From IMG/VR virus record IMGVR_UViG_3300044796_000657, positions 186,001-250,000 of that record: a DNA stretch of 64,000 bases; one strand, given 5' to 3'. How positions within the stretch are numbered: position 1 is the stretch's first letter; the number at the start of each line of letters is the position of its first letter. The notes below the pieces were generated by a model that worked only from the letters and a program-made list of their open reading frames with translations, was not told where the DNA came from and did no database searches. Of this stretch, positions 4,147-59,883 are shown piece by piece. Both the position numbers and the translations under genes were made by a program.

Positions 4147-4218
4147 CTACTTCGTTGGCAAGATTGCCGACTGCGACCGGTCGAGGATACCGGCGAAATT
4201 TCTTCAAGGAGAGACAGA

Positions 4219-4545
4219 ATGAAACGCTTTTTCACGTTGGCATTGGTGGCTTTCGCCGCAATCGTCGGGGCATCGGACGCCAAGGCTTTCGGCCTTCGGG
4301 GCAAGTGTAGCGGCAGCAAGTGCGGCACGACCTGTAGCAAGCCCGCAACCACCTGTAGCAGCGCCAGCGGTTGTTCCAGTGGTGTTCAAGTCGCCTCGTA
4401 CACGACCGCTTCCTACACAACTTCCGCCCCGACCGCCATGCCCACGGCAAGCACGACCAACCTGCAGCCCAACACCGTGTACATCACGGACGCCAACGGC
4501 AAGCTCATGATCGCCCCGGCGAACATGCAAAAAACCACCAAGTAA
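4219..4545 (+). CDS. secreted Cys/Ser/Thr-rich small protein
   Basis: AAGGAG SD, Sec signal peptide ending A-K-A, Cys-rich low-complexity region, GC-rich codon usage. Confidence 0.75.
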   Translation: MKRFFTLALVAFAAIVGASDAKAFGLRGKCSGSKCGTTCSKPATTCSSASGCSSGVQVASYTTASYTTSAPTAMPTASTTNLQPNTVYITDANGKLMIAPANMQKTTK

Positions 4546-4597: not shown

Positions 4598-7570
4598 TTA
4601 ATGAGTAACAGAAACACGGAACTTCAAAATCTCTTGTCCACACTTCAATCGCACATGATGATCGCCAACCTTGGTAGCCTTGAACCGGAAAGAGTCAAAA
4701 TCCGTTTGTGAGGAACCAAAGAAGTCTACCCCGGTATCAAACTCCCCTATCGTCCAACGACTTATCAATCGTGTATCATCACCGGCGTACCTTATCTTCG
4801 GCCTAACTCTTGCTTGGAATTCACACCCCAATTTAACATCCACTACGCTATCGTTGTCAACATCAAAGCATTTATTGTTCATTTTGATGGGAATAAGCGT
4901 AGCCGTTTCCACAGCAGGCAACTTCACGTAAATGTACAGACGACGACGAACCCGATGGGTGTTGTCCTCCATCCCATTATCGCTAGGCACATGGATCTTA
5001 TTATAGGTTTCGTACAATAAGGTGGCTACTTGAATAGCCGGTGATGCCGTCACCTGTGATATTTGCTTCAGGGTTTCGGTCAAATCGCCATTAAAAGTTG
5101 CTGCCAACGGCTTGAAGAACATACAACCTTTAAGGTGTGTCGGTTGATCTTTAACAAACCACGGCCTCATACGATCAAGACACGGTGAATCCTTCAGCTT
5201 CCGCCACAACTCCAAAGGTATAGAGTTTTCTACCAATCTCAACGACCAGTCATTAGGCCAATTCTTGTCAACGGGTGGCCCCTTAATGTAGAGTGTTGAA
5301 GTTTCATCAAGAACTATACACTCTTCATGCTTCCAAGTAGGAAGGAATTCATACTTACTACCCGCCGCTTCATGCCGTACGATGGAAGAAACCAATCTCT
5401 GCGGTGAGATAGGTTGATAAATCGGCTCTACGGTTTCACCCTTCTTGACATGCAACATGATGACTTTGGTGCCACCGCTACATGTGATTTGTATAGCGCC
5501 AGCCGGATATGTTCCCGGTTCATCTGGCAACTCACCCATCTTAATCTTGAAACGAGCTTCTTGACGATATTTAACTGTTGACAATTGCCAAATCTTATTA
5601 ACGTCCAAGATCGGCTTGATTTCACCAACCTGCAAGGGCGTAATAGTCCATAATTCCCCGGCAACTTTCTCTTTAACAGCGCCTTCAAAGGCATCAGCCG
5701 GTTCCGACAAGCGGATAATAACATTTTGCTCAGGCAAGATAGTCACATCTTGCATGTGAATTGGATTGTACAAAATTACGTCTTCACTACTCGCCACTGT
5801 CGTAGTCATCGGGGTGGAAGGGGATGAAGTTCCCGAAGCTTTTGTATGGAATAATGGGCGGGTAACACTCGTTGTTGCAGACTTTTTTTTAGACATATCA
5901 ATGCCATAGTAGTCGTGATCATAGTTGTAAATGCTCACCGCTTTATGCAACTTAACTTCCGACAACTTCTTTGTAAAAGCGTGGCCTTCCAATGTCGCCA
6001 AAGGAATTTCTTCGATGACGACCTTGGACTTTTTGGGCATACTGTAATAACCGATGCCTTGCTTCCAATGATTGCCGCCATGCGAAGACGAAGCAGTAGT
6101 CGCACCAGAATAAACCGAATAGGTGGACGTAGAGGAGGTAGAGGTTGAAATTGGCTTCAAGTACTCTACTTCTTTTGTGAACCAAAAGGCAATACGTCTT
6201 TGACTCTGCTCTAAATTCTTTTTAGGTGGATACGTAAGACGATACGAACCAATCGCCCTTTGAGCAGCATCCAAACTTAAGTTTGCAGTGATGCTGAACC
6301 TTTGGAAGAGGTGACCGTGCTTGGTAATCGGTGTGAGAGTACCGACATTAAGATATTTATCTTGAATGTGTCCGGCATCATAAACGATTTCCCAACGAGC
6401 ATCTTCCGGCTCATCGGGCCAATAGACATGGGGAACCGCTATCTCAAAAGTGTGATTGTTGAGACCGTTGTGAAAATCAATGCTTTCATGTAAAGCAGGG
6501 TTCGTCATCGAACTCTTAGCATTATCTTTAAAGCGTTCCAATGCTTTGTTGCGCAACGCCACCGGATCAGACAATTCCATTACCGGCTCCTCAATGATGT
6601 TGTCACGCTTGCCATGAAGTGACAGCATAACAATCATCGGGCGAGTAATCAACTGGTTACCACGCCGACCCGTAAATATCATACGTGAAATGGCATAAGT
6701 GCCACTCTTGATACCTTGCGCAGTTCTTTGACTTGCCTTAGAAAATGAAAACCAAAAATGATGCTCACGAACCGGAGTCGGCTTCGGGCGAATTTCGGCC
6801 CTTATTTCTTCGGATAGGTTGAAGTTAAGTGGCGGATTATGACGACGCAAAATTGTTTGCCCGCCAATAACACCACCATCACTTTGATCCTTATCAATCC
6901 AATAGTGTCCCGCTTGAACAAGGAAGACACCTTTCCCGTCAATCTCATGATCTTCCATGACCACGCTCCACTGATCGGGCGATTCAGTTACGCCTTCAGG
7001 AGCAGGTTCCCAATCTTCACAAAACACAACTTCCAATGTGCGGTGAGGCTCAATTTTGATAACATTGGTATTGGGGTTGATGACAGTTAATACGTCTGGC
7101 CGGGCTGTGCTTCTGCCCGGTGGCGTAGTATACAACATGACCGCTCCACCCGACAACGAGCAGATGGCTTTTTGAGGATGTTCATTCCCTTTTAATTCGT
7201 AATGGATTTCACCCAAACATATTTCTGAAACACTAATCCATGATTCAATATCATAGATTTGGGCAAATTCATAAACTTCTTGATTTTTCTTATTAAAAGA
7301 TTTCCCAATTAGTGTTAAGTATGGCGAAGTGGTGGTGAAATCCCAATACGCACCTTCGCTAACATTGCTGGCACTTCTGGGGTTATCCAGAACAATGCGC
7401 AATCCTTGGCGTGGAAAAAGACGTACAGTATGCGCAACCCCCGGATTCACGACCCGTTGAGGATTCGCCGTCTTCTTCTTGGCGGATTTCTTTTTCCGAA
7501 TTTTCATTGGCATCGCTGTCGCCGTTAAGAGTGCGAGGTTAAATAGAAATTCAAAAGTTTTGTCTGTCAT
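4598..7570 (-). CDS. large multi-domain protein with repeated Ig/chagasin-like beta-sandwich units
   Basis: Recurring hhNP..x..h.h.P...h.h.h units; C-terminal VDVKLG.EF...W...FRFKATKVG..HVRL pattern; ATGA overlap fixes start at 7570. Confidence 0.6.
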   Translation of the reverse strand: MTDKTFEFLFNLALLTATAMPMKIRKKKSAKKKTANPQRVVNPGVAHTVRLFPRQGLRIVLDNPRSASNVSEGAYWDFTTTSPYLTLIGKSFNKKNQEVYEFAQIYDIESWISVSEICLGEIHYELKGNEHPQKAICSLSGGAVMLYTTPPGRSTARPDVLTVINPNTNVIKIEPHRTLEVVFCEDWEPAPEGVTESPDQWSVVMEDHEIDGKGVFLVQAGHYWIDKDQSDGGVIGGQTILRRHNPPLNFNLSEEIRAEIRPKPTPVREHHFWFSFSKASQRTAQGIKSGTYAISRMIFTGRRGNQLITRPMIVMLSLHGKRDNIIEEPVMELSDPVALRNKALERFKDNAKSSMTNPALHESIDFHNGLNNHTFEIAVPHVYWPDEPEDARWEIVYDAGHIQDKYLNVGTLTPITKHGHLFQRFSITANLSLDAAQRAIGSYRLTYPPKKNLEQSQRRIAFWFTKEVEYLKPISTSTSSTSTYSVYSGATTASSSHGGNHWKQGIGYYSMPKKSKVVIEEIPLATLEGHAFTKKLSEVKLHKAVSIYNYDHDYYGIDMSKKKSATTSVTRPLFHTKASGTSSPSTPMTTTVASSEDVILYNPIHMQDVTILPEQNVIIRLSEPADAFEGAVKEKVAGELWTITPLQVGEIKPILDVNKIWQLSTVKYRQEARFKIKMGELPDEPGTYPAGAIQITCSGGTKVIMLHVKKGETVEPIYQPISPQRLVSSIVRHEAAGSKYEFLPTWKHEECIVLDETSTLYIKGPPVDKNWPNDWSLRLVENSIPLELWRKLKDSPCLDRMRPWFVKDQPTHLKGCMFFKPLAATFNGDLTETLKQISQVTASPAIQVATLLYETYNKIHVPSDNGMEDNTHRVRRRLYIYVKLPAVETATLIPIKMNNKCFDVDNDSVVDVKLGCEFQARVRPKIRYAGDDTRLISRWTIGEFDTGVDFFGSSQTDFDSFRFKATKVGDHHVRLKCGQEILKFRVSVTH

Positions 7571-55127: not shown

Positions 55128-55157
55128 AAAAAAGCCAAGCAATGCTTGGCTTTTTTT
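55128..55157. terminator. Bidirectional terminator
   Basis: A6-GCCAAGC-AAT-GCTTGGC-T7. Confidence 0.85.
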
Positions 55158-55644
55158 ATTTATCGGACATCATGCCGGAACCTGCCCCGTATTCATTCAC
55201 TTTTTTTTTAGCAGTAAAATCAGCCAATTGTTTTTTCGCAAATTCTACAACATCACTAACATGATTACACGCAGCAATTGCTGTAGGGGAATTTCTTTTT
55301 TTAGCAGCTTCTTTTTGTATTTTTTGTAATTCCTGTTTAGAAGTTTCAACTTTCTTTTTAGCTTCTTCAAATTTCTTTTGCTGGAACTCTGCTTCTTTTT
55401 TCTTCATTTCGTCTGGCGTTAACTGAATTTCATTAACGACATAGAAACCTTCACGGGGATATTTGGCCGGTGAATAATAGCCATCATGCCTAATGTTTTG
55501 CAAAGAACAAACCTTAATGTTCCTGTCTTCCAATTTGGCATTCTTGCGGGCATTAATGTACCCCTGACTGTAAGCCTCTGCTTCAGCATAAAAAACAAAA
55601 GGCCCACCCAAATAAACGTATCGTAATTGCTTTGGCACGATCAT
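55156..55644 (-). CDS. hypothetical coiled-coil protein
   Basis: 162-aa ORF downstream of ncRNA cluster. Confidence 0.55.
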   Translation of the reverse strand: MIVPKQLRYVYLGGPFVFYAEAEAYSQGYINARKNAKLEDRNIKVCSLQNIRHDGYYSPAKYPREGFYVVNEIQLTPDEMKKKEAEFQQKKFEEAKKKVETSKQELQKIQKEAAKKRNSPTAIAACNHVSDVVEFAKKQLADFTAKKKVNEYGAGSGMMSDK

Positions 55645-55653
55645 TCTCTCTGG

Positions 55654-55834
55654 GTGGACATTAAAAAAAATCTCGTTTATGGTATTTCACCACGACCGGC
55701 GTTGACACTTAACTCTATCTAACCCAGACAGACTACACAGATAATAACCCATTGCTGTGAGGCCGATAGAGAAGTATCCGGTTTACTCATAGCCCACTCA
55801 TCTCTAATGATGAGCTAACGAGACCATCATCCAC
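55654..55834 (-). ncRNA. Y-RNA-like structured element C
   Basis: GTGGA/TCCAC, TCTCGTT/AACGAGA, GCTCATC/GATGAGT, CCGG/CCGG, GATACTT/AAGTGTC, CTCTATC/GATAGAG helices; ATACTTC motif; downstream of Ro60. Confidence 0.55.
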
Positions 55835-55874
55835 TATCCGTTCCGATAACCGGCAAGAGTCGTGGATGAAAATT

Positions 55875-55949
55875 TCACGAAAACGGCGAAAGGTTAATGT
55901 GAGGGTAACATTTAGCAGATGTACTCACATCGAGATCCGTAATTCGTGA
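55875..55949 (-). ncRNA. Y-RNA-like minimal hairpin B
   Basis: TCACGAA/TTCGTGA, ACGG/CCGT, ATGTGAG/CTCACAT with GTACATC motif and pyrimidine-rich 3' bulge CCTTTCG. Confidence 0.6.
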
Positions 55950-55974
55950 TTCAAAAAGGGTTCAAAGCCCTTCG

Positions 55975-56048
55975 TGACTGAATGATGGAATTGAACCATC
56001 CTATCTTGTGGGTATAAACCACTGACGCCCCCGTGGCAATTCATACCC
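55975..56048 (-). ncRNA. degenerate tRNA-like element
   Basis: T-arm GATGG-TTCAATT-CCATC (55984-56000), anticodon-like GTGG-TTTATAC-CCAC, short D-arm GCC/GGC, 5-bp acceptor TGAAT/ATTCA. Confidence 0.55.
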
Positions 56049-56053
56049 ATATA

Positions 56054-57667
56054 TTACTCTTCATCACCTTCATCTTCAATAGAAGATTTTCGCAGGTGTT
56101 TACCGTCTAAATCAATCTTCACAATCTCGCCCACAACATGGTCGGCATCCATATTGCCATCAACGAATTGCTTAACCAACTTGAAGACGTTGTCACTAAA
56201 CCCGCCAAGGTTCAGAACATCCTTCATTTCCTGTACTTGCGTAGTGGCGTACGGTGCTACGTCGATACAAACCAACTTCGCCTTCGGATTACGCTGCTTC
56301 CAACGCTTCCATTCGGCTTGGAATTGACTCTCACCCTTCAATCTCTTACCGTACCGATCCGTATTCAACGATTCACACCAAGATTGATTGTCCGATACGC
56401 AGATCAGCAAATCGCCAACCCTGTTCGCATCGTTCAACAACTTAAGTGGCGCCCAACAAGCCGTACCACCATCCGCAATCTTACCGATTGCCGACGCATT
56501 CGCCATCACAGATTGCTCCGGATCGACATTGAATGGTACAACATGCTTTTGGAAGAACATCATTTCAGCGTTCGGATTGTTTCTCTTGAAACAAGACGCA
56601 ATCAGCGCAGCCACATCCACACAACGAGTTACCGTTGAAGCCGATCCACGACCGCCCGTCACTGGGTACGTCATGGACTTGGAAACATCGGTAAAGACGT
56701 ACGCAGGAACGCTATCCTTGTAATGCGTCTCAAACGACGGAATGTTGCGAGTAGCAATCTCCATCGCCCGTTCCAAACCATCCCGCAACTCGACAGGCAC
56801 ACCAACGGTATTTTGGTACGCCGTCATAATCTGATACGGAAATACGGAAGCCTTTTTGATCGACACAGGATCAGCCAAGCGGTTTGCAAGCAATTCAACC
56901 ATCCCCGGCACGTTAAACACACCTTGTCGTTGAAGAGTTGCCAGATTACGGAGCAACCAGAACCAGCTCGCCTTTTGAGCGATTTCGGCCCATTGATCGG
57001 TGCCTAACTTTTTGGCAGTATACATACGGAAATCCGTCTTCGGCATTTCCTTAGTTTCGCCCTTCTTCCACGCTTCGTAAACCTTAACCGATTCCGGCAA
57101 CGCATCATGGTTAAATGGTCGGTCAACCATCATACCATAAAGGGCGGAACGAGTCTTATCCAATGGGCGTGGGTGAATGTTCTTCAAGATCGTCTTGAGA
57201 GAAGGCGTACCGACGCTCTGTTGCCAGATTTCCGTAGGCGTACGGCTATTCAACCAATTAACCATTAACTCTTTTGGAACGGTTCCAAAAGACTTACGAC
57301 CGGTCTTGCCAGATCGAATGATTTGGTAGAAATTGCGGAACATCGTGCCATCGTTAATGACACGTACGAAAGTCTTACGAAGCAGCTTCGTTTCCTTGCG
57401 TGCAGCTAATACAGCGCATAACAAGGCCGGAACATCCTTCATAAAGTACAATTCACGGCTGAACACGGCACACTGCGCCACGAATTCAGGCTCCACAATC
57501 ATTGCGGCATTTTGAATTTGATCTAGCTGTTTCTTGGCACTCACGTAAAGCGTGTTGCCGAGACATGAAGTCGTGCTGAGTAAAGCAAGGGTTTGCTTGG
57601 GCGTTAATTGATACGCTACACCACCAGCCTCATTGAAAGAATCCAAAGAACTAAATAACTTATTCAT
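56054..57667 (-). CDS. Ro60/TROVE domain RNA-binding protein (Rsr)
   Basis: NEAGG.AY, MKDVPALL, GRKSFG, HPRP, LRNL.T..R.GV, FPYQ...AY, vWA DVS.SM..PVTG.RGS, GGT, VSDNQSW, GGFSD.VF. Confidence 0.95.
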   Translation of the reverse strand: MNKLFSSLDSFNEAGGVAYQLTPKQTLALLSTTSCLGNTLYVSAKKQLDQIQNAAMIVEPEFVAQCAVFSRELYFMKDVPALLCAVLAARKETKLLRKTFVRVINDGTMFRNFYQIIRSGKTGRKSFGTVPKELMVNWLNSRTPTEIWQQSVGTPSLKTILKNIHPRPLDKTRSALYGMMVDRPFNHDALPESVKVYEAWKKGETKEMPKTDFRMYTAKKLGTDQWAEIAQKASWFWLLRNLATLQRQGVFNVPGMVELLANRLADPVSIKKASVFPYQIMTAYQNTVGVPVELRDGLERAMEIATRNIPSFETHYKDSVPAYVFTDVSKSMTYPVTGGRGSASTVTRCVDVAALIASCFKRNNPNAEMMFFQKHVVPFNVDPEQSVMANASAIGKIADGGTACWAPLKLLNDANRVGDLLICVSDNQSWCESLNTDRYGKRLKGESQFQAEWKRWKQRNPKAKLVCIDVAPYATTQVQEMKDVLNLGGFSDNVFKLVKQFVDGNMDADHVVGEIVKIDLDGKHLRKSSIEDEGDEE

Positions 57668-58138: not shown

Positions 58139-58684
58139 TCATACCTTATTACCACAAATTTTCAATCGCTCTTTATGATGAACAATTGCATCTGGTAAGG
58201 CAATTTTCTCCTGCTCAAAAACTTTACTAGCTAAAGTCTCCGGCGTATCACCCTCTTCTACCGCAACAATACGCTGTGTAATGATTGGCCCTTGATCGTA
58301 CTGATTCGTGACGTAATGAACAGTGCATCCACTAAACTTAACACCACTCTCAATCGCCGCTTTATGTACATTGATTCCAAACATCCCCTTGCCACCGAAA
58401 GCAGGTAAAAGGGACGGATGAATATTAATTACTTTTCCAGCGTAATCAGGCGGAATTTCAAGCATTTTGAGAAAGCCAGCCAAAACAATTAACTCAACTT
58501 TTTTCTCTCTTGCGAACTTAAAAAACTCTTTTGTTTCACGACAAATAACTGTTGGTATTCCAGCCTTTTCAGCAATAGCCAAACCGGGGCATTCTTTCGT
58601 AGAACCTACCCAAACAATCTTAAAATTCTTATCAATGAGATTAGCTAATGATCTACCTGTGCCGCTAATGAGTACTGCTATCAT
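58139..58684 (-). CDS. purN: phosphoribosylglycinamide formyltransferase
   Basis: IAVLISG.G, VLAGF, INIHPSLLP.FGGKG, SGCTVH.V...D.GPI; start at ATG 58684. Confidence 0.92.
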   Translation of the reverse strand: MIAVLISGTGRSLANLIDKNFKIVWVGSTKECPGLAIAEKAGIPTVICRETKEFFKFAREKKVELIVLAGFLKMLEIPPDYAGKVINIHPSLLPAFGGKGMFGINVHKAAIESGVKFSGCTVHYVTNQYDQGPIITQRIVAVEEGDTPETLASKVFEQEKIALPDAIVHHKERLKICGNKV

Positions 58685-58775
58685 AATTTTCCCATACAAA
58701 CCCGACAACGCCAACAGGGGTGACTCCACGCTATTGTTTTCTCTGCTGATCTTTTTTGTCGCCACGCCGTTTCAT

Positions 58776-58922: not shown

Positions 58923-59672
58923 CTACCAGTTGGATTTGCGAAGGCTCACAATCCATTGATTCAGGAATGTCTCGTCGCAAGCTTCCGGTAGTTTCCACGG
59001 CTTTAACTCCTCGATAGCAGCGACTCGTTCGTCGACCATTGCTTCGATAGCAGGGAAATCGTACTCATAACGGCGAATTGCCATTAAGAAAGCACGCTCT
59101 TCATTATCTTTCCAAATAACCGGATCACCACCTTGAGCAATCCTCGATGCATCGCCCAACAACCTAAAGATGTGATAAGCAAAGTTTTCAGAACTCTTTT
59201 TAGCCTCGTAGGATCGTCGCAAATGTGACATTTGACCGTCAGCGAATCCTAAGTAATGCTTAACAACTTGTTGCGTGAGAAATTGAGATTTGATTGAGCG
59301 AAGCTCTTCCCATTCAGATGACCACTCAGCATTCTTCTCGGTAAAAAGCATTTCAATGATGGTCGGATTGCCCTTAACTAGAAGTTTGCTGAACTTCAAA
59401 ACTTCATAAAAAGCATGATCAGGGTATTTGCCTTTATCTCGCTTTTTGTCGTCATGACAGACAGAATCCAATTCCGCCGTGTCGTAATTTAATGCCACAA
59501 CATCACGGGTAGGGACAATGTACACGCCCGCATAATCCCGGTCACTTAACAGGTGATGGGTATTGTGGCAGCGACTCCCGGCGAGTTTGCCGAAAATGAC
59601 ACGACCCGGCATAGGGCGGCTTTTCAAAAACTGCCTGTAGCCGGGTTCTTCGTCAGTGAGTAAGTTTTTCAT
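58923..59672 (-). CDS. Pol-beta-fold nucleotidyltransferase (RlaP/YcgL-like)
   Basis: GS..H.T....SD.DY.GVY, YE..KF..L..KGNP..IE.LF, YLG.A..Q, H..RL. Confidence 0.85.
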   Translation of the reverse strand: MKNLLTDEEPGYRQFLKSRPMPGRVIFGKLAGSRCHNTHHLLSDRDYAGVYIVPTRDVVALNYDTAELDSVCHDDKKRDKGKYPDHAFYEVLKFSKLLVKGNPTIIEMLFTEKNAEWSSEWEELRSIKSQFLTQQVVKHYLGFADGQMSHLRRSYEAKKSSENFAYHIFRLLGDASRIAQGGDPVIWKDNEERAFLMAIRRYEYDFPAIEAMVDERVAAIEELKPWKLPEACDETFLNQWIVSLRKSNW

Positions 59673-59673
59673 C

Positions 59674-59883
59674 TTAGCCCTGCAGTCCAATGACACGACC
59701 TTCATCGTTTCGCACGACAACCTTGCCGGGCGGATTGTGCTTGGCATCATCATCCGCTGCCTGCACGAGCGTACGACAATGAGCAAGGTTGGACAAAGCC
59801 AATGTCCGCTCTGGTGAGTTGGGGAGAGATCCAATCTCTCCCCGAAGGTTAACAAACAAAGCGGCCATTTTCGTGTTTTTCAT
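59674..59883 (-). CDS. small hypothetical protein
   Basis: 69 aa helical hairpin LPNSPERTLALSNL. Confidence 0.55.
   Translation of the reverse strand: MKNTKMAALFVNLRGEIGSLPNSPERTLALSNLAHCRTLVQAADDDAKHNPPGKVVVRNDEGRVIGLQG

Follow-up and report, generated by a model that had tools for sequence, protein, structure and literature searches.

The closest described counterparts of the locus considered here are the bacterial and phage Y RNAs, in which mimicry of tRNA is a published theme (Chen et al., 2014, PMC4201824). In YrlA, a T arm is followed by an acceptor hairpin of 7-8 bp and then by a D arm, and this whole domain lies inside the Ro-binding stem; the RNA is cut by RNase P, and the published Y RNA motif reads GNCGAAN0-1G (PMC4201824). 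The YrlB RNA of M. smegmatis also has a T arm (Chen et al., 2014, PMC4201824).

We have analyzed a 64,000-nucleotide stretch of viral DNA (the window), which corresponds to bases 186001-250000 of a 430,229-base IMG/VR record; positions are window coordinates unless marked as genome coordinates. The record is flagged as a provirus, is 97% complete and has a G+C content of 43%. ARAGORN makes 37 tRNA calls in it, one of them with an aberrant four-base anticodon, together with a tmRNA, and the majority of the tRNAs lie at genome 383-428 kb. A preliminary description of the window had drawn attention to a 74-nt segment (56048-55975) directly after the stop codon of a Ro60 gene and had presented it as a degenerate tRNA mimic with a UAU anticodon loop. 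We consider below how this segment compares with true tRNAs, with YrlA and with the RNAs found at other phage Ro60 loci.

Results

The Ro60 operon and its spacer

Ro60, the 74-nt element and a neighboring Y RNA are all carried on the minus strand, and the letters that had been described are all present on that strand, beginning 5 nt past the Ro60 stop (Table 1). The Ro60 protein is 41.6% identical to the TROVE protein of Myxococcus phage Mx1 and has 2521 homologues at E<=1e-20. The gene order RlaP - formyltransferase - Ro60 - RNA spacer is conserved and is also found on the contigs of relatives; clade-wide, the order runs RlaP, a stand-alone formyltransferase N-domain protein, a small ORF, Ro60, the RNA spacer and a DUF6065-like protein. 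RlaP has been described as an RNA-ligase-associated family with the predicted role of restoring nucleotides lost at cleaved RNA ends, ahead of RNA ligase action, and the CCA-adding enzyme belongs to a separate family (PMC7824862).

Table 1. Features of the Ro60 locus, in window coordinates, ordered as they would be transcribed.
Feature	Position	Strand	Basis or remarks
RlaP-family nucleotidyltransferase	58923-59855	-	Pfam RlaP 1.5e-15; upstream of Ro60
Formyltransferase-like gene	58139-58765	-	Pfam Formyl_trans_N 3.2e-32; upstream of Ro60
Ro60 (TROVE + vWA)	56054-57667	-	Pfam vWA_Ro60 1.4e-14, TROVE 7.3e-7
Ro60 stop codon	56056-56054	-	ORF list
H1 stem-loop	56009-56049	-	14 contiguous and 3 apical pairs; begins 5 nt past the Ro60 stop
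'Anticodon arm'	56008-56022	-	4-bp stem 56022-56019/56011-56008, 7-nt loop UUUAUAC; ARAGORN drawing at the 80% threshold
T-arm hairpin	55984-56000	-	5-bp stem 56000-55996/55988-55984, loop UUCAAUU 55995-55989, G-C closing pair
AUUCA, proposed 3' acceptor strand	55979-55983	-	Two possible partners
H3 hairpin	55951-55977	-	Loop CUUUGAA; fold of the 412-nt spacer
Canonical short Y RNA (YrlB-like), predicted	55872-55952	-	R1 covariance model, 65-67 bits, E about 1e-12 to 4e-15
Three more predicted hairpins	55681-55866	-	Spacer fold; kind not assigned
Run of 8 U	55663-55670	-	18 nt ahead of the start codon of the next ORF; no stem directly before

The Ro60 stop codon is separated from the next ORF (55156-55644) by 409 gene-free bases. 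No promoter-like site was found on the minus strand in the interval between Ro60 and the RNAs, and the first clear terminator in a terminator scan, a bidirectional one at 55128-55156, lies past the next ORF; the scan did not call the run of eight U. Because there is no such promoter before the RNAs and the terminator comes only after the next ORF, the spacer RNAs are probably cut out of the operon transcript. In Salmonella, the RNAs of the rsr-yrlBA-rtcBA operon are cut out of their operon transcript. One peat metatranscriptome contains 85% of the sampled words and has contigs that cover the spacer, one of them corresponding to 55277-56030, with the next of the pieces listed beginning at 56176; these contigs are silent on RNA ends, strand and level, and may reflect DNA carry-over. 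No variant positions were seen within the element in either run.

The Y RNA of the spacer was recognized with a covariance model, R1, which we built from an RNA of about 80 nt that recurs in the spacers of the nearest Ro60 homologues (ten copies, the one in the window included). Compensatory changes are found at 16 of the 17 pairs in the family alignment, and R1 has many matches in 26 more distant IMG/VR Ro60 loci. The conserved letters of the family (CGAAUGC ... GGGACUACAU ... CUUGUCG) correspond to the published Y RNA motif, and on this sequence evidence the neighbor of the element is thus identified as a canonical short Y RNA. Its basal stem leads through an internal loop, where the CGAA motif has the variant form CGGAU, to an inner stem and a loop that starts with UACAU, and its R1 score makes it a clear member of the YrlB-like short Y RNAs. 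The CGGAU, where the family consensus is CGAAU, recurs in the copy at 4676-4755 of locus L003, and the window RNA is without the C of the conserved GACUACAU. The match is the only one that R1 finds in the window, so that of the several neighboring Y-like RNAs spoken of earlier, one was recovered. At the gathering thresholds of Rfam 15, searches of 20 Ro60 loci returned only tRNAs and tmRNAs, and a search of the window was empty; with R1, Y RNAs are found in the window and in the majority of these 20 loci, at scores of up to 83 bits. The three additional hairpins between the Y RNA and the U run match neither Rfam, R1 nor the second model, R2, described below.

Folding of the 74-nt element

The long hairpin that had been mentioned as an alternative to the cloverleaf is real and corresponds to H1. 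Together with the T-arm hairpin, it forms the minimum-energy fold of the 78 nt considered (-25.5 kcal/mol, z = -3.1), and its pairs have ensemble probabilities of 0.69-1.0. H1 has a G-rich apical loop and encloses the 5' acceptor strand (56043-56039), the 'D arm' and the UAU triplet (56016-56014); it is mutually exclusive with the 'anticodon arm'. We considered H1 as a mini or second Y RNA and rejected it, with a score of 7.5 bits (E 0.36) against R1. Stable hairpins also directly follow the Ro60 stop in L003 and in L004 (4613-4639).

The T arm was claimed to have a perfect 5-bp stem, and it does. Its pairing probability is about 0.48, with a slipped 7-bp register in competition. The 5-bp acceptor pairing of UGAAU (56043-56039) with AUUCA (55983-55979) also exists as letters, and the 3' flank, GUCA, encodes no CCA, both as described. 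The same AUUCA can form six pairs with UUGAAU at 55954-55949, across a 21-nt insert, and the five-pair upstream alternative has a probability of 0 in the ensemble.

Downstream of the T arm lies H3, which, when read as its reverse complement on the plus strand, also fits the strict T-arm motif (genome +241956). Over 7 nt, the H3 loop and the T-loop are exact complements, the segments concerned being 55997-55991 in the T arm and 55965-55959 in H3. Given this complementarity, the two hairpins could kiss or refold into a single merged helix. There is, in addition, a direct repeat, GUGGU-N3-AUACC, at 56022-56011 and 55693-55681, so that the H1 3' strand has a second copy near the distal end of the spacer, which can take its place in pairing; L058 has a comparable repeat, one copy at the beginning of its RNA region and the other in a terminator hairpin.

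We next compare these structures with the cloverleaf. With default settings, ARAGORN reports no genes in the window. The relaxed search that had been proposed as a check does draw a tRNA-Ile(tat) at 56046-55974, at the 80% threshold, and this is chance level: with this setting, the real genome yields 293 calls and shuffled genomes yield 187-210. A plus-strand tRNA-like call at 55904-55980, obtained only at the relaxed threshold, was discarded as noise. The Rfam tRNA model (RF00005) scores 14.1 bits, where the gathering cut-off is 29, and E is 1.5 when 121 nt are searched; the T arm contributes most to this score. Rfam searches of the window, of 2.5 kb and of the 121 nt, at gathering thresholds and at E<=10, gave no Y RNA, tmRNA or tRNA above threshold.

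Taken arm by arm, the T arm (56000-55984) has what a tRNA requires, namely a 5-bp stem, a UUCRANN loop and a G-C closing pair. The acceptor has five pairs, two mismatches and one further pair, the D arm has two pairs, and the anticodon stem of the ARAGORN drawing has four. Two cloverleaves were evaluated at -10.3 and -10.7 kcal/mol and the best fold with the acceptor forced at -16.6, versus -25.5 for H1 and the T hairpin, in a model that does not include tertiary contacts and modifications; any fold in which the acceptor stem is retained is thus worse than H1 by about 9 kcal/mol. The idea of a mimic or decoy that presents UAU is not supported by these comparisons, since its cloverleaf is at chance level and the better fold buries both the UAU and the 5' acceptor strand. 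The suggestion had been framed by the avoidance of UAU anticodons in bacteria, which does not hold here: a normal tRNA-Ile(UAU) gene lies at genome 424450-424526, and the phage therefore does not avoid UAU. On these comparisons the 74-nt element is not a tRNA, and it very probably neither decodes nor displays an anticodon.

Only the T arm, among the parts of the element, exceeds chance. We defined a strict T-arm motif as a 5-bp stem with a G53-C61 closing pair and a UUCRANN loop. Shuffled genomes contain 1.2 such motifs on average (both strands, 20 shuffles), and about 6e-4 would be expected on the sense strand of this 409-nt spacer. The real genome contains 49, of which 33 lie in called tRNAs or the tmRNA; the window element is one of the 16 elsewhere. 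Nine more of the motifs outside ARAGORN tRNA calls may belong to unusual tRNAs or tRNA-like RNAs that ARAGORN missed. Two of these nine, at genome 143599(-) and 167331(-), are isolated and intergenic, and seven lie on the plus strand in the tRNA-array region (383463, 387726, 390938, 397201, 401428, 423586 and 424731), three of them also within short stop-free frames. The motif at genome 387726 has the T-loop UUCAAUU, identical to that of the window element.

Comparison with other Ro60 phages

T arms that do not belong to tRNAs are characteristic of the Ro60 loci of phages. Outside called tRNAs, the 34 phage loci examined contain 47 strict T arms on the Ro60 strand versus one on the antisense strand. 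About 15 of these directly precede a perfect, closed 7-bp hairpin, and their folds have the YrlA layout of Ro-binding stem, T arm, acceptor-like hairpin and D arm. At L026 618-761, a cloverleaf in the normal tRNA order is found within the loop of a Y RNA. The expectation of a tRNA-style part beside Ro60 and a Y RNA was right in kind and matches the published tRNA mimicry of Y RNAs (PMC4201824).

From 14 phage examples we built R2, a model of the domain formed by T arm, acceptor hairpin and D arm, in whose alignment 93.5% of cells are paired and whose observed covariation is matched by 0 of 500 shuffles. In the window, R2 sees a bare T arm only (5.9 bits), and the element is therefore not a YrlA-type domain. 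R2 finds no such domain anywhere in the phage, its other hits being tRNA-tRNA junctions. A YrlA-like arrangement in which the downstream UGAAU closes the acceptor stem was also considered and dropped; it has six pairs across the 21-nt insert, and R2 gives it no support.

The comparison with YrlA (PMC4201824; Wang et al., 2018, bioRxiv 10.1101/312249) can nevertheless be drawn in some detail. Like YrlA, the element is encoded beside Ro60, on the same strand and together with a Y RNA, and it has a canonical T arm followed by a hairpin where YrlA has its closed 'acceptor' stem. Unlike in YrlA, the T arm is placed 5' of the Y RNA and not within it, there is no D arm after it, and the hairpin that comes next is interrupted. 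The T arm is not enclosed by a Ro-binding stem with the GNCGAAN0-1G motif; the Y RNA lies downstream, at a distance of 31 nt. The T arm also lies outside the Y RNA as R1 delimits it, in which the arrangement differs from M. smegmatis YrlB.

We compared nine sub-clade members for which DNA is available and whose Ro60 proteins are 50-65% identical, leaving out the two nearest in Ro60, P0002 (69%) and P0006 (55%), and also P0010. In the closest relative with DNA, L002 (Ro60 65%), a true tRNA-Thr(UGU) with its own consensus promoter directly follows the Ro60 stop. The window element occupies the same site and shares with this tRNA a T arm and a short acceptor-like pairing. Unlike the tRNAs of L002, L026 and L027, it fails ARAGORN and the Rfam threshold and has no usable D arm, and, unlike in true tRNAs, its anticodon stem is excluded by a far more stable hairpin. 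L003 (Ro60 60%) has a stand-alone cloverleaf between two Y RNAs, at 4767-4851, which neither ARAGORN nor Rfam calls. Its acceptor stem is 8 bp long and its T arm is bulged; at the position of the anticodon loop, a 7-bp arm carries a loop of 4 nt. As in the window, the tRNA-like part is separate from the Ro-binding stem, in the same sub-clade; the L003 structure differs from the element in its 8-bp acceptor and in being a minimum-energy fold, and the two have no sequence in common.

The preliminary description had named a lack of T-arm conservation among relatives as an outcome that would refute it, and this is largely what was observed: in seven of the nine, a T-arm hairpin is absent from the vicinity of Ro60, also when the rule is relaxed. 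When the 412-nt spacer was compared with all loci and with the phage's own genome by blastn-short, no sequence common to the element and its relatives was found; the sole match was the Y RNA loop, shared with L008, and a 9-nt match with L003 was dropped as chance-level. Neither megablast against phages nor a single-protein IMG/VR scan found a close DNA relative, and a 16-nt pattern from the Y RNA loop had 21 chance matches in IMG/VR, none with a Y RNA. The theme recurs among relatives, but the element itself does not. Highly structured RNA without an R1 match also follows Ro60 at L058:4142-4452 (z = -6.9), L002:4625-4745 and L059:4103-4262, and these regions may be divergent Ro60 partners.

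Where the Ro60 gene of a phage is itself part of a tRNA array, the Y RNAs are joined to tRNAs with gaps of 0-4 nt. At L020 (5998-6134), a tRNA ends at 6072 and the Y RNA begins at 6073. At L026 (1254-1476), the Y RNA occupies 1329-1396, between tRNAs that end at 1328 and begin at 1401, and at L026 (4123-4406) it occupies 4197-4329, between tRNAs that end at 4196 and begin at 4333; in L027 (252-498 and 654-824), the Y RNAs are likewise flush with tRNAs. The phage studied here has a second, divergent Y RNA at genome 387418-387498 (+) (locus L062 1499-1579; R1 31-35 bits), which lies in the tRNA array, 145 kb from Ro60, and is butt-joined to a tRNA-Pro (387344-387418). This arrangement suggests that phage Y RNAs are released by the nucleases that process tRNA ends, that is, RNase P and the tRNA 3' nucleases.

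Discussion

The element is a variant of the known association of Ro60, Y RNA and tRNA-like parts, and it is a member of neither the tRNA nor the YrlA family. The explanation that we favor, tentatively and at somewhat less than an even chance, is that it is a tRNA-derived structured leader of the Y RNA cluster, composed of H1 and an orphan T arm and acting in cis in processing or stability. Such a leader would be co-transcribed with Ro60, ahead of H3 and the single canonical Y RNA. H1 would form right past the stop codon, locking away the 5' acceptor strand and the UAU triplet. The operon transcript would be cleaved somewhere between Ro60 and the Y RNA, and H1 would provide a barrier against 3' exonucleases for the Ro60 message; the hairpins directly after the Ro60 stop in L003 and L004 fit an end-protecting role of this kind. 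The T-arm hairpin would represent a minimal tRNA-like handle, possibly a vestige of an earlier tRNA gene or of a domain of the YrlA type. TruB and TrmA recognize isolated T arms, and the handle could be a site for either of them or for tRNA end-processing nucleases, and might assist in freeing the 5' side of the Y RNA or in shielding it. That a perfect T arm is found amid an otherwise unrecognizable would-be tRNA fits selection on the T arm alone.

One function proposed in the preliminary description, a processing signal that releases the RNA cluster, would fit the butt-joined Y RNAs and tRNAs of other Ro60 phages and of this phage's own tRNA array. If tRNA end-processing nucleases do release Y RNAs, the presence of a tRNA-derived element at the head of the cluster becomes understandable. 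The leader explanation is weakened by the finding that no relative has the element, and hence that there is no covariation for H1, the T arm or H3. It is also weakened by the position of the T arm, which is not flush with the Y RNA, and by the divided register of its stem. Moreover, the T arm could be the last recognizable piece of a dead tRNA gene.

This last point leads to the strongest rival, in which the element is an inert remnant: a tRNA gene after Ro60 has decayed, the T arm is what is left of it, and H1 is an ordinary intercistronic hairpin. We consider this unlikely, though it has to be taken seriously. The intact tRNA-Thr of L002, with its own promoter, stands at the same position, and many phage Ro60 genes lie within tRNA arrays, with 30 tRNAs in L026, 11 in L027 and five in L030. 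The order and spacing of the arms still yield 14 bits with the tRNA model, and the lack of conservation within the sub-clade also speaks for a relic. The decay would, however, have to have been uneven, with a perfect stem and T-loop left beside totally degenerate D and anticodon arms, and the element has no similarity to the L002 tRNA or to any tRNA of the phage itself.

It is improbable that the resemblance arose by chance, from ordinary hairpins in a structured spacer of which one happens to fit the T-arm consensus. Such an origin would agree with the background level of the relaxed tRNA call and with the absence of conservation. For 64 kb and both strands, the expectation is about 0.18 strict T-arm motifs, and five of the motifs in this genome, inside stop-free frames (>=80 codons) far from the tRNA array, look fortuitous. 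The expectation for this particular spacer and strand is nevertheless the far smaller value given above, the site is exactly where tRNA-like parts are known (PMC4201824, and the 34 phage loci compared here), and a second T-arm-type hairpin lies 45 nt away.

A further model, which we regard as distinctly improbable, is that of a 'split YrlA', in which, within this phage sub-clade, the tRNA-like effector part and the Ro-binding Y RNA have become separate. A compact, differently wired module with the shape of a tRNA would then be formed by H1, the T arm and H3, the last with its loop complementary to the T-loop. Once excised from the transcript of Ro60, this module would act together with the short Y RNA, either in trans or as its 5' extension; the apical loop of H1 could serve as a stand-in for the D-loop.

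Still more doubtful is a single Y-like RNA of about 385 nt, a greatly expanded YrlA in which the 5' strand of H1 pairs with 55700-55681 and encloses the T arm, H3, the Y RNA and the three hairpins. This closing stem is present in the minimum-energy fold of the 412-nt spacer (-129.7 kcal/mol, versus -125.8 with H1 forced), but a gap of 4 kcal/mol is within the error of the method, and the closing duplex, at -26.1, is matched by 14.6% of shuffles and is not significant. The distal strand repeats the 3' strand of H1, H1 has, in its 5' strand, a GAAU-GCC stretch reminiscent of the Y RNA motif, and L058 has a large structured RNA past Ro60. Against this, co-transcriptional folding favors the local H1, and the canonical Ro-binding motif is missing from the closing stem.

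Finally, a functional degenerate tRNA or decoy with a UAU anticodon, which might be charged after receiving a CCA tail from the neighboring nucleotidyltransferase, is barely credible: M. smegmatis YrlA does receive CCA (PMC4201824), the T arm is perfect and ARAGORN draws the tRNA at its 80% threshold, but that call is at chance level, the Rfam score is about half the cut-off, the D arm, acceptor and anticodon stems are deficient, the cloverleaf is far less stable than H1 with an acceptor pairing probability of 0 in the ensemble, a normal tRNA-Ile(UAU) is already present in the phage, and RlaP is a predicted RNA-ligase partner, the CCA-adding enzyme being of another family (PMC7824862).

The purpose of the tRNA-like parts of Y RNAs is debated, and protection from nucleases and recruitment of partners have been put forward. 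If the element is a decayed tRNA only, the finding is an ordinary one. A lone T arm that lies outside the Ro-binding stem would, if it is functional, show which piece of the mimic is needed. The butt-joined Y RNAs and tRNAs of these phages, for their part, suggest a simple and testable rule, namely that phage Y RNAs are freed by the nucleases that process tRNA ends.
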